Assembly (NCBI GenBank): GCA_002269645.1
Contig: NIVC01000044.1
Span: 1 to 64,000, forward strand
Direction of reading: 5' to 3'
DNA: 64,000 bases
Source of the DNA: Macrostomum lignano
Lineage: Eukaryota
This document shows, piece by piece, positions 43,001-47,126 of the stretch. Made by a program: the position numbers and the translations under genes. Under the pieces are notes generated by a model. It made no database searches. It saw only the letters and a list, made by a program, of their open reading frames with translations, and had not been told where the DNA came from. Position 1 is the first letter of the stretch, and each line of letters begins with the position of its first letter.

Positions 43001-46000
43001 TTTCCAGAACTCTGAACTCCCAGCACTGACACAACCAGCAATGATTTGTCACCGAGGGTCTCGTGCAGTTTTTTCATCAGCGCCTCGACCCACTTGGTAG
43101 GGATGCAGCTGACGTCTCCATCCATCAGCTCAATTGGGTGTCCATGCAGCAGCAGCTGCACAGTGGAGGTGAGCAGCTTGTCGGTGAAATCTCGATATTT
43201 TGTAGCCATGCTATCGGTACTCACAATTGCCTCGTACACCTGGCAGACCTCACGGAGAATATACTCGATTCCAACTCTTTTATTCTGTTCTTCCTGAGCC
43301 TCAGTTAGAGTAGCCTGTGCATCAAAACTAATCTTCAAGCACTGTAAAAAGATAAGCACAGCCGAATCCTCTGAGGCTTGGTTAAGAAAATCGAAAAATA
43401 ACTTCATAAAGCCTTTCGGATTTTCCATTTCATTCGATAGAAGCTCCATTTGCTTTTGTCGAAGCTCTCTGATCCTTGATTCATCCTCATCAATTTGCTT
43501 AAGTTTTTCTTCCGAGCTCAATTTTTGGACATTTCTTACAATGCCTTTCTCTAATTTTGCAATCTGTTTCCAAGGCTCTTCTTGCAATGGAAACAACGAT
43601 TTCTTTTGCTCCACCGAAATGCTACGAGCCGTGCGAACCAGTGTTTCAGCATTTTTTTGCTGCAAACGAATTTCTCTCTGAACTTCATCAACTTGCCAAC
43701 CTGTAAATTTTTTTGCGTTTTCAATCATAGCATTAATTGAAATAGAATTTTGTTGCGCCTCGCTTAGCCTATTGCTGAGTTGTATCTTTACATCATTCAC
43801 GCAATCAGATAGCCTCTTTTTACCAATAACTATTGACACTGAGTCCATAAAATCATTGCCAAAGTTTTCAGCTGACGTCAGTTGTTCTACATAGCGTGGA
43901 ACATCGATCGAAGTTGAAACCAGCAGGAGGTTTTTATTTTTCTTGAATAGGTCACTGAGAGATTCTGTTACTGCACTCTGCTGCTGAGTATCCAAGCCCT
44001 CATCATCGGGGAGCAGTACAATGACGCAGGCTGACACGTCAGCAAGAAACTGTCGCTGTTTCACAAACTTCATGGCGTCACCCCTCAAATTCAGGACGCA
44101 AGCAGCTTCGTTCAGTTCAAGAGGGTTACTATCTGCAGTTGGGAATATCCAAGCTTGCTCAATGCTGCCGGCACTTAAAATTCTGCTGCTTCTTGATTCC
44201 GATGGCTCGCTGAACGCCAAATGTTTGTCATCGATGCACTTGTTGATTATCTGAGACTTAGAAACCGTGCTAACGCCAAGCCTAAGTACAGATATCACAC
44301 GAAAATAATCAGAAATCATATGCTTCTGAACATTGACTTCACCATGGACTTTGTACTTGAGAACGCATGATCTGAGAGGCCAGGTGAACAGCTGCACACC
44401 TTCTGCAGCACTCCAAGCTATCGGAACAGCCATCTTGCAGTCGAAAAGCTTCTCTGCTATCAGCTGCTTTAGCCTGGCATCGCAGCAAAGAAAACAGGCA
44501 AGAAAAACATCCGAAGGAAACGGTGAGACCTCTGCACCTTCCTCAGCTTTTGAGCTGTCCTCGCCTTTATACCAACCGTTTTTTATCGCTGCAGGTGCTG
44601 CAGGAGACGAGGTTTTTAACTTAGTTTTTAAAAAATTCCTCACCGATTCATAGTCAGTCATAATAACTGCTTTCAATATTCGATAAGCAATATCTTCCAT
44701 GTGGTTTGGCGAAGCTTGACTCTCATCCTGAAGCTTCATGACTTCACAGGGAGTAATCTTGTCCGGAAAGCTCTCTGTTAGATTTAAAATCCTGAAAAGT
44801 TTTTTCTGGTCTTCTGTAAGAGAATTTCGTGTCACTTCCAGAAACTCTGTGGATGGCACTTCAACCGAATTTTGTGAGGGTTCGTCTACAGCAAAGCTGA
44901 GCTGCAGCGGCTTTCCATCCCTGGTGAAGTTTGTCAATAGTCCATTCACTTTTTCGCTCAAACTGTTCCAGTCTTTAGACGTCTTGAAACTCTCTACCGC
45001 CTGTCGCACTGTTGAAGTCCAGGCAACATGGTTCAACAGGCTTATAGCACTTTCACGAAAACTCCATTTACCTCCTTCATGTAGGATCAGGATTTTTAAC
45101 AACTGACAATCAATGAATTGTGGCTCTCCAGTGTTTTCAAGTTTCCTGAGTTCCTGAATCATTTCATCAAGATTTTCAGTCATTGCTTCAATCTTTTCTC
45201 GAGTGAGTAGCAAGTCGAATTCTTCGTTTTCAAGCTGAAACGACGCTCTAGAAGAGCCAAAAGTGTCACAAACAGTGCTCTTTTTTGATCGGCTTCAAGA
45301 TGCTTGAGCAAATGTCTCACTGCAGCTGTGAGGTCTTGCCGAACAACTTGTAACACTTTTTCTTCATCACAACCCGGCTTGCTGATCTCTCTTTGCATGT
45401 CTGGTAGCGTTCGGCTGCGGATAGCATCTAATAGTTGTTCCGGTGTTGTGATTCGCATATCACTCAAAGCAGTGTACTTCGGTTTCACCGATTTTTCCTG
45501 CATTAGGCAGACAATCTTTTCTTTTTTCGGAAACTCTTTGCTTCCCGACAGCTCAATCAGGCGCTTCAATTGCTTTTTGATGGCTTCTCCTTCAAAGCAA
45601 TCCAGATCACGCTTTTCCGACCAGAATGCTTCAAGAAACTGCTGAACGCTTTCTAAGTGCACCCAGCCTTCACCTTTGCGATCAGGAACTGTGAGCTGCT
45701 CAATTCGTTCCAGCTTGTCGCACACAGTTCTCAAGCGATCCTCCCACTGCTTCAGAGTTTGAATTTGGCCTGAGTTGCTGATGACGCTGCAAACGCCTTT
45801 AACGAATTCATTTGCTGATTCAATTGCATCAGAGCATTCGCCATCCACTTCCTCGTCGCGAAGACCAGTGAGGGACTCCCACACGGACTTGAGTGCTTGT
45901 GACAGGGCTGAAGGGTTGTGGAACTCACTTTTGTGATGCTTTACTAAGTTCCAAGCTCCATGTTGAGATGATAGCTTTGTGATGATAGCAAAGTTTTGGG

Positions 46001-47126
46001 GCTCTTCAACAGTGCCACCGTTGCCTCTTTCAGTGCTTTTTATAACAATATTCTCCATTCTTTGATCGCTTGAACACTCTCGATTTGTAGATTCTCCCTT
46101 TGCAAGTCTGCCATGCGCTCCAAAACCGACCCGGGGTCCAAAAGCAGTCGCAAAAGATGCATCTAATTCCTTGCTCACAAGTTCCCGGTACGTTTCAGCG
46201 TCCTCCAATCTCTCGCTCTTGTACTCTGCAGTTGTAACGAACAGGGTCCCAAAATACACTGTTCCGTAAGTTACATGGCTGCCAAAGTTGGAGAAAAAAC
46301 TTTCAATCGAGCTGTCAGCCTTGCCTTTCAGATTGAGCTCTTTATCTATCTTCTTTAGCTCTTCTACAGCTTCTGCTGAAAGTCGAAGCTGAGACTGCTT
46401 TAAATTGCATGCGCCAGCTGCCTGGGTGTGAACACGGCAACGGGAGATGAAGCAGCTCGTTTTGTGCTTCTCTGTGCCCTGAGTGCCTTCTTTGTAATAT
46501 GAGGCATCTGCTTTCGCTTTAGTTGCGGAAAGTCCAACATTGACATCTGCTTGCATTCCAACTTTCAGCTCCCCTGTAGTCAAAGACGAGCTGAAGTTGT
46601 CCAGCTGCTTCTGTGTGGAGAATTCCTCATAAAAGCTTTTACTCAGATCTGATGGAATAAATGATAATGGTTCGCAAATCTCCATGAGCTGACGCTCTTT
46701 TCGAACCCATTGGCCCTCCAAGAAGAACAAACCTTTTAAAGCAGCTCCCTCTGCAGCACTGGATAGGACTTCAACTACTTCAGTGTCTGATAGGGGTCGA
46801 GTCAATTGTTGCCTCTGCTGTTGATTCTGCTCTAGCATTTGCTGGCCTGAGTCCAGCTTTTTCTGAGCTTCTGAATTATCTTGCAGCTTTTGATTCCTCT
46901 CGCCTGCTGCCGCTTGCTCAGCATGCTTTTCTACGGCTTTCAATGCCCGTGACTCTTCTGTGTGCCTCTCAATGGCCTCTTTCTCTTTGGCGGCCACAAA
47001 ATCCTTTGCAGCCTGCTTTTCCCTCTCCTCTTTCTCTTCCTTTTCTTTCTTTTCCTGCTCTGCATTTTCTTTTAGCTTCTCGTCATCCATCAGCTCCGCA
47101 TTGGCTGTTGATGATGAATCGCTCAT
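40024..47126 (-). CDS. GVIN1: Very large inducible GTPase (GVIN1/VLIG/URGCP family), single coding exon, ~2,367 aa after correcting one frameshift near 45240
   Basis: G1 VLGVQSSGKSTLLNTMFG (43020-42997), RCTKGAF switch region, G3 DTEGL, G4-like FIHKDV, family motifs FLCCD..LKQ.IAEKLFDCKMAVP and NLRGDA, C-terminal FWQWFVCKF. ORFs 45180..47126 and 40024..45213 overlap in adjacent frames. In-frame TAG 12 nt upstream of the ATG. Family assignment is firm; orthology to GVIN1 is not. Confidence 0.88.

Follow-up and report, generated by a model that had tools for sequence, protein, structure and literature searches.

A predicted MACPF domain at the N-terminus of long GVIN-type GTPases, traced from a frameshifted gene copy in the flatworm Macrostomum lignano

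Introduction

The GVINs, or VLIGs, are the least understood of the interferon-inducible GTPases. A 2025 study reports that human GVIN1 forms coats on cytosolic Burkholderia, that the human gene is divided among three open reading frames (ORFs), of which the longest, of 1808 amino acids (aa), is the functional protein, and that no GVIN function had been reported previously; its domain assignment by AlphaFold3 and Foldseek contains no mention of MACPF or perforin-like folds, and GBP1 is described as surfactant-like on the bacterial outer membrane (bioRxiv 10.1101/2025.03.24.645074). Here we describe a gene of the GVIN class on the minus strand of a 64,000-nucleotide (nt) stretch of the Macrostomum lignano genome (contig NIVC01000044.1, assembly GCA_002269645.1, positions 1 to 64,000 of the forward strand; hereafter the window), whose N-terminal module is predicted to be a MACPF domain. 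An earlier note, made from the sequence alone, had proposed such a pore-forming domain at 45860-46770, fused to a giant immune GTPase in an invertebrate. The host is indeed an invertebrate, a free-living flatworm, and the proposed span corresponds to residues 119-423 of the first of the two ORFs described below.

In the literature searched we found no paper that joins GVIN, VLIG or very large GTPases to MACPF, perforin or pore formation, and no relevant paper on MACPF in M. lignano. Those papers that contain both GVIN and MACPF terms, judged by titles and term counts, are transcriptome or immunology studies in which the two are mentioned separately. A cytosolic, GTPase-attached MACPF domain is visible in the databases and not discussed in the searched literature.

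Results

The N-terminal module has a predicted MACPF fold

The module lies in the first ORF of the gene (ORF1), and its parts map as follows. TMH and CH denote the two regions expected to form transmembrane hairpins.

45180..47126, minus strand: ORF1, 648 aa from ATG to stop, with the MACPF module between a charged N-terminal region and a helical linker, ended prematurely by a frameshift
45852..46790, minus strand: residues 113-425, the conserved N-terminal module of long GVINs that holds the predicted MACPF fold (Pfam MACPF, 140 representative homologues, AlphaFold 2 (AF2) and Foldseek)
46455..46619, minus strand: residues 170-224 (55 aa), TMH1/CH1 region between central strands 1 and 2, including ELKVGMQADVNVGLSATKAKADASY
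46571..46497, minus strand: ELKVGMQADVNVGLSATKAKADASY, residues 186-210, alternating polar and hydrophobic
46388..46347, minus strand: LRLSAEAVEELKKI, residues 247-260
46284..46376, minus strand: residues 251-281, helix-turn-helix preceding the signature, its first helix overlapping LRLSAEAVEELKKI (model helices 147-163 and 167-177)
46298..46248, minus strand: FFSNFGSHVTYGTVYFG, residues 277-293, with FGSH at 46286..46275
46245..46286, minus strand: MACPF signature FGSHVTYGTVYFGT, residues 281-294, start of the long bent strand 3, its GG degenerated to GT
46050..46214, minus strand: residues 305-359 (55 aa), TMH2/CH2 region, including LDASFATAFGPRVGFGAHG
46166..46110, minus strand: LDASFATAFGPRVGFGAHG, residues 321-339
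46014..46025, minus strand: GNGG, residues 368-371, aligning with the conserved GGP of the family after strand 4

All five motifs that the earlier note had listed in MACPF order are present in this ORF (47126..45180), in that same order and where the note had placed them, FGSH at exactly the positions given. Within FGSHVTYGTVYFGT the F-G-S-H core is kept, with a spacing one residue longer than in complement C8 alpha and with GT for GG.

The Pfam MACPF model (PF01823) matched whole ORF1 with an E-value of 1.1e-5 (26.2 bits) and residues 105-440 alone with an E-value of 1.8e-6 (28.7 bits), in both cases above the curated cut-off of 21.5, although the match spans only positions 7-159 of the 214 in the profile. 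A profile built from 24 domain segments of the family (profile A1) matched, among PDB sequences, complement C8 alpha (E 1.8e-5), pleurotolysin B (E 8.5e-4) and Photorhabdus Plu-MACPF (E 0.03). Taken one at a time, 11/24 of these segments match Pfam MACPF at E <= 0.01. The EGFR-kinase matches that a single-sequence phmmer search of ORF1 against the PDB returned were set aside as spurious (E > 0.1); a profile search was needed.

The template-free AF2 model of residues 105-440 has a mean predicted local distance difference test score (pLDDT) of 76.3 and a predicted template-modelling score (pTM) of 0.72. Its elements run from a strand through a low-confidence stretch of 55 residues to a long strand, a helix-turn-helix, a long bent strand that starts at GSH, a helix with a second low-confidence stretch of 55 residues, and a final strand, which as modelled is the MACPF topology beta1, TMH1, beta2, helix-turn-helix, beta3, TMH2, beta4. 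When the model was compared with the PDB by Foldseek, the top 50 matches were all MACPF at a probability of ~1.0; the best was pleurotolysin B (E 1.3e-10), and C9, C8, MPEG1, Mpf2Ba1, GNIP1Aa, astrotactin-2, perforin and TgPLP1 were among the others. The structure check suggested in the earlier note thus returned matches of the MACPF/CDC class, and in its top 50 MACPF only. Similarly, an AF2 model of the corresponding segment of a possum GVIN1-like protein (pLDDT 73.9, pTM 0.67) had only MACPF structures in its Foldseek top 50, again with pleurotolysin B as the best (E 1.3e-12). Beta-periodicity of TMH1 in the window copy stands out against shuffled sequences (z = 3.5), and that of TMH2 is at or above zero in 24/24 family members, modestly so, mostly at 0.5-2.

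One might suppose that these motifs mimic the MACPF signature by chance and without homology. Such a reading could point to the modest 26 bits of the single-sequence Pfam match, to its restriction to positions 7-159 of 214, and to four full-length relatives (P0152, Lytechinus, lamprey and possum) in which a Pfam MACPF match at E 1e-3 or better is absent. Pfam detection of the GVIN MACPF subfamily is marginal and most full-length members are missed by the model, which is probably the reason that the domain is not routinely annotated. Chance resemblance is nevertheless effectively refuted by the profile match to PDB sequences together with two template-free models, from different clades, whose top 50 structural matches are exclusively MACPF. 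On this evidence the fold encoded here, with its bent four-stranded central sheet, two TMH regions of 55 residues, helix-turn-helix and [FY]GSH signature, is a true though divergent MACPF fold, homologous to the MACPF proteins, and on this point the Pfam match above cut-off, the profile matches to C8 alpha and pleurotolysin B and the structure comparison all agree with the earlier note.

The module is shared by long GVINs across Bilateria

Homologues were collected by an exhaustive phmmer search with residues 105-440 against 1.84 billion representative sequences (E <= 1e-3), which returned 140 proteins with a best E-value of 7e-31. Word-indexed homologue searches were uninformative: they gave one match for ORF1 and three for profile A1, and missed a paralog of 88% identity. 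The motif [FYW]G[ST]H-x5-9-G[GAST] occurs in 135/141 proteins (the 140 matches plus P0001), and the typical form in the family, (F/Y)GSHx7(F/L)GG, is the MACPF signature with one additional residue.

Thirty of these 141 proteins are 2300-2700 aa long, and in the long proteins listed the domain falls within about the first 600 residues. Named members include four M. lignano proteins. Proteins named 'interferon-induced very large GTPase 1-like' come from Lytechinus pictus, Lethenteron, Pyxicephalus, Mauremys, Anguilla, Megalops and Acipenser, and VLIG-type members from Erpetoichthys (reedfish) and a bat. A hidden Markov model built from A1 found the module in 9/33 matches of a GTPase search, for example in GVIN1-like proteins of possum and sugar glider, where it lies at about residues 155-533; no match came from the 1500-2000-aa 'URGCP-like' or short forms among those 33. 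The arrangement of MACPF, URGCP, GTPase and C-terminal regions is the standard architecture of GVINs of ~2400 aa, from flatworms to marsupials. The fusion is thus no peculiarity of the window gene, and the related segment in vertebrate GVIN1 that the earlier note had mentioned is borne out, since the same N-terminal domain is present in vertebrate GVIN1-like proteins and the possum one models as MACPF.

The recent Pfam family PF26771 co-occurs, in the analysed set, only with proteins that bear the N-terminal module, and its neighbouring families are GVIN1 and GVIN1_C. A 505-aa flycatcher fragment of the family has been automatically named 'MACPF domain-containing protein' in UniProt. A 1567-aa GVIN-like protein (P0162) is also recorded from a metagenome-assembled genome of 'Candidatus Thiodiazotropha sp.', on a 5-kb contig; it most likely represents animal-host DNA that contaminates the bacterial bin.

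The GTPase half and the predicted topology

The second half of the gene follows in ORF2.

40024..45213, minus strand: ORF2, 1729 aa, the GTPase half of the gene
43639..44517, minus strand: URGCP domain, ORF2 residues 233-525 (PF25496, E 5.8e-49)
42415..43437, minus strand: URGCP-like (VLIG-type) GTPase domain, ORF2 residues 593-933 (PF25683, E 3.8e-95)
43020..42997, minus strand: P-loop GVQSSGKS (G1), intact
42864..42853, minus strand: DTEG (G3, DxxG), intact

The two domain matches agree with the GVIN/VLIG class that the earlier note had named. ORF2 also gives weaker Pfam matches to GBP, RHD3 and dynamin, and its homologues carry public names such as 'VLIG-type G domain-containing protein' and 'interferon-induced very large GTPase 1-like'. 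Judged by its sequence, the gene is a predicted GVIN/VLIG-type giant dynamin-like GTPase of M. lignano. The public model BOX15_Mlig002090g2 (P0151; 1725 aa), on the same contig of the same assembly, matches ORF2 with 100% identity along 98% of the query. The public annotation at this locus covers the GTPase half only, starts at an internal Met and has a spliced C-terminus unlike that of the plain ORF; no gene is called over the 648-aa MACPF ORF in the public record of NIVC01000044.1. By tblastn, the window holds no second copy of the gene.

Two features at the start of ORF1 bear on how the protein would be made and where it would reside.

47142..47150, minus strand: actttgcag, resembling a 3' splice acceptor, 16 nt upstream of the ORF1 ATG, read directly from the sequence
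46797..47126, minus strand: residues 1-110, a K/E/Q-rich, strongly hydrophilic N-terminus without a signal peptide (Kyte-Doolittle mean of -1.7 over residues 1-30)

Trans-splicing occurs in M. lignano, and actttgcag is probably an acceptor for either cis-splicing or spliced-leader trans-splicing, in which case the coding sequence would lie in one large exon. A Kyte-Doolittle scan over all 19-residue windows of the protein reached a maximum of 1.48 and gave no transmembrane helix. Because both a signal peptide and a transmembrane helix are lacking, the MACPF domain would be cytosolic, unlike those of perforin, complement and MPEG1.

A one-nucleotide deletion separates the two halves

ORF1 and ORF2 lie in different frames of the minus strand and share 34 nt; the ORF2 frame is closed upstream of 45294. 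Protein identity with the M. lignano paralog P0152 (BOX15_Mlig012665g1; 2371 aa) is 88% for ORF1 and 87% for ORF2, and the paralog runs continuously across the junction (...LLALLKASFQLENEEFELLLTREKIEAM...). Its locus (L001 6001-13116; contig NIVC01003842.1, 22563-29678) is a single unbroken ORF of 7116 nt. In the nucleotide alignment of the window gene with P0152 (94% identity) the sole indel that breaks the frame is the following.

45246..45252 (near 45249), minus strand: site of a 1-nt deletion, TTCT-AGAGCG in the window and TTCTAAAAGCG in the paralog

A mitochondrial-carrier gene comes after both loci, and the two are therefore duplicated copies of one locus. We also considered a short intron or a programmed frameshift at the junction and rejected both, since the two ORFs share no more than 34 nt and P0152 differs by a plain single nucleotide. 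The proposal in the earlier note that a single polypeptide carries both domains thus does not describe the window as read, where the deletion leaves 648 and 1729 aa apart, and does describe P0152, in which the fusion is intact.

The deletion itself is about as likely to be real as to be an assembly error. If it is real, the window copy would be decaying or decoupled, yielding at most a truncated 648-aa MACPF protein and a separate GTPase translated from an internal ATG, with no fusion at this locus. We regard this as a serious possibility that falls somewhat short of even odds. The change of frame, caused by a lone frame-breaking difference from an intact paralog, speaks for it, as do the public annotation of the GTPase half (P0151) alone with no gene over ORF1, the similar division of the human gene into several ORFs, and ratios of nonsynonymous to synonymous substitution (dN/dS) of about 0.55-0.6. 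It is opposed by the fact that ORF1 and ORF2 are otherwise fully open over 7.1 kb, the remaining indels relative to the paralog all preserving the frame, and a single-base indel is a typical error of long-read assembly; the Macrostomum assembly is, we presume, one that rests on long reads. The dN/dS values between the window copy and P0152 (0.55 for the MACPF module, 0.57 for the GTPase domain and 0.62 for ORF2) are moreover below 1 in every segment, contrary to long-standing neutrality.

The break in the flatworm locus, with the MACPF ORF on one side and the GTPase ORF of 1729 aa on the other, falls at a position comparable to that in the human gene, which has three ORFs, one of them of 1808 aa. 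Such comparable splits may reflect recurrent detachment of the MACPF module.

Other elements of the window

Adjoining the GVIN locus, at 5481-14915 on the minus strand, is an ORF of 3144 aa that consists mostly of tandem repeats of 84 nt (28 aa) and 105 nt (35 aa), in arrays at 4842-7161, 10006-11615 and 12646-14099. It scores as a generic coiled coil (ATG16, crescentin, myosin tail and similar) and is, as predicted from its sequence, the gene of a giant repetitive coiled-coil protein. Two arrays of ~1.2 kb at 57183-58354 and 59012-60279 are built of one 21-nt satellite (GTGAGATTGAGCATAGACACA or its reverse complement) in opposite orientation and, ~650 nt apart, make up one large inverted repeat, from which the 'ORFs' that overlap on both strands at 57183-60279 presumably arise as artefacts. 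Minisatellites with units of 17-36 nt and up to 99 copies are unusually dense, at 20613-21324, 29054-30066, 32496-34751, 35087-35650, 54310-56684 and 60803-64000. One of them, a purine-rich 21-mer array, reaches the end of the window, where the GC skew rises to as much as 0.8. Upstream of the GVIN gene, at 47590-47790 on the minus strand, a palindromic element carries copies of ttttcgagcttgtgatgg and of its complement, inverted relative to each other, around a degenerate telomere-like stretch (ccctaa-like: ccgtaaccctaattaacctaaccctaccc) and could be a small foldback insertion or one resembling a miniature inverted-repeat transposable element.

Discussion

Taken together, we consider it close to certain that the window gene belongs to a GVIN-type family with an N-terminal MACPF fold as part of its family architecture, that the protein is cytosolic in topology, and that the window copy is split by a frameshift and a paralog of it is intact. 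The earlier note had gone further and suggested that one polypeptide could couple GTP-driven assembly on a target membrane to the formation of a pore. In intact members, the GTPase half would drive nucleotide-dependent self-assembly on a target membrane, either that of cytosolic bacteria or that of a pathogen-containing vacuole; we propose this step because human GVIN1 and GBP1 form coats. Assembly would concentrate the N-terminal MACPF modules and so promote their oligomerisation, whereupon TMH1 and TMH2 would unfurl into beta-hairpins and breach the membrane. By analogy with these systems, we put the sequence of GTPase-driven assembly followed by MACPF oligomerisation and insertion at roughly one half. 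The explanation as a whole, namely the MACPF-GVIN architecture with a putative pore-forming step, has in our estimate a probability of about 0.55.

Several observations weigh against it. Both TMH regions are modelled at low confidence by AF2: TMH1 (residues 66-120 of the model) is mostly below a pLDDT of 50, and TMH2 is a helix (206-230 in model numbering) followed by a low-confidence stretch at 231-248. The beta-periodicity of TMH2 in the window copy is weak (z 0.8), and the Foldseek TM-scores are moderate, at 0.35-0.48. At the locus itself, the frameshift near 45249 divides the copy into ORFs of 648 and 1729 aa, where a single polypeptide of ~2400 aa would be expected, and the dN/dS values indicate only moderate constraint, which is common in fast-evolving immune families and would also fit one relaxed copy. 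The signature GG has become GT in both the window copy and P0152, and the window copy, which keeps GNGG, is without 11-12 residues of the conserved GGPx8WKxGL after strand 4 (xxxxxxxxWKxGL), the first Trp included. Coat formation, moreover, needs no MACPF domain, because the human 1808-aa GVIN1 forms coats presumably without one; by its length, compared with relatives of 2430 aa, this protein should lack the MACPF part. Pore formation by a GVIN MACPF domain is a suggestion drawn from the fold, and several MACPF proteins, among them the astrotactins, BRINPs and Torso-like, are not known to form lytic pores.

The changes around the hinge extend to other Macrostomum proteins. The family consensus after strand 4 is GGPx8WKxGLVxxNxTWxVIDRG; P0152 has a similarly short GG-proximal stretch, in the more distant P0002 the GG of the signature is GA, and the M. 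lignano paralog P0004 retains both the GG and the Trp segment. With GT or GA at the GG hinge and the Trp-bearing segment gone, the effector may have been weakened or repurposed in the window copy and in the Macrostomum proteins closest to it.

These losses lead to the main alternative, in which the perforin fold serves a GTPase coat as a module for oligomerisation, membrane docking or ligand binding and makes no transmembrane pore. In this Macrostomum clade the hinge GG and the Trp segment disappeared while the rest of the ORF shows no obvious decay; astrotactin-2 is among the structural matches; and human GVIN1 of 1808 aa acts by coating, with co-factors required before the bacterial outer membrane is disturbed. 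Against such a role, [FY]GSH...GG, two TMH regions of ~55 aa and alternating stretches rich in Ser, Gly and Ala are kept across the family from flatworm to mammal, as is expected of a MACPF domain that forms beta-hairpins, and the closest structural matches (pleurotolysin B, C9 and MPEG1) are true pore formers. On balance we hold a non-lytic role to be possible and rather unlikely, and we continue to prefer a pore-forming step.

If pores are formed, their target could be the host cell. Once the GTPase has sensed infection, a cytosolic MACPF domain might perforate the plasma or organelle membranes of its own cell, in the manner of gasdermins, MLKL or NLR-type proteins whose N-terminal domains form pores. 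The cytosolic topology without a signal peptide and the placing of an effector at the N-terminus, ahead of a large NTPase switch, are as this would predict, and repeated loss or decoupling of the MACPF domain (in the short URGCP-like forms, in the divided human gene and in the window) fits a module that is costly to carry. We nevertheless judge such a suicide role improbable, as no GVIN is known to have cell-death activity and human GVIN1 localises to bacteria, even though that protein probably has no MACPF domain.

More tentatively, and with the odds against it, the long GVINs might be ancestral GTP-gated cytosolic perforins, dynamin-like GTPases that would gather on the membrane of a pathogen or vacuole from its cytosolic face and fire their own MACPF domain as the killing step, the domain having since been repeatedly detached or lost, as in human 1808-aa GVIN1, the short URGCP-like forms and the window locus. 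To our knowledge interferons occur only in vertebrates, and we know of none in flatworms; because the architecture is present in flatworms and sea urchins, such a machine would predate interferon.

For the GVIN family as a whole, the conserved N-terminal MACPF domain of the long forms supplies a concrete and testable effector hypothesis. Were it borne out, this would be a rare perforin-fold domain that acts from the cytosolic side with a GTPase in control, and the module offers an explanation of why some lineages, humans included, keep the GTPase half only. The window gene itself, with its frameshift and degenerate motifs, is of smaller value, being a single member of a flatworm family that has multiple copies.

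Comparison with known systems

Among stand-alone MACPF proteins, pleurotolysin B of Pleurotus ostreatus is the best structural match of both the flatworm and the possum models and is also matched by the family profile; it differs in being a secreted fungal toxin without a GTPase that needs PlyA/OlyA for membrane binding, and the identity is 11-18%. MPEG1/perforin-2, perforin and complement C6-C9 share with the flatworm module the MACPF fold, the (Y/F)G(T/S)H signature and two TMH regions, and they have a role in immunity. MPEG1, perforin and complement are secreted or lumenal proteins with signal peptides and extra domains of their own (P2, C2, TSP, LDLa, EGF), whereas the flatworm protein is predicted to be cytosolic, with MACPF followed by a GTPase. 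Astrotactin-2 and other non-lytic MACPF proteins have the same fold, and astrotactin-2 appeared among the Foldseek matches; it is, however, a neuronal integral membrane protein and has no connection with an immune GTPase.

On the GTPase side, GBP1, which coats cytosolic Gram-negative bacteria, is likewise a dynamin-superfamily GTPase that self-assembles on the surface of the pathogen, and ORF2 gives a weak Pfam match to GBP; GBP1 itself has no pore-forming domain. The closest system is GVIN1/VLIG-1 with the URGCP family. Between the flatworm GTPase half and vertebrate GVINs the identity is only about 25-27%, and the window copy is frameshifted and has lost the MACPF hinge GG and the Trp segment. 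The likenesses are the URGCP and URGCP_GTPase domains with P-loop and DxxG, a length of about 2400 aa from one large exon, and the same predicted N-terminal MACPF domain in the long members of possum, turtle, frog, lamprey and sea urchin.

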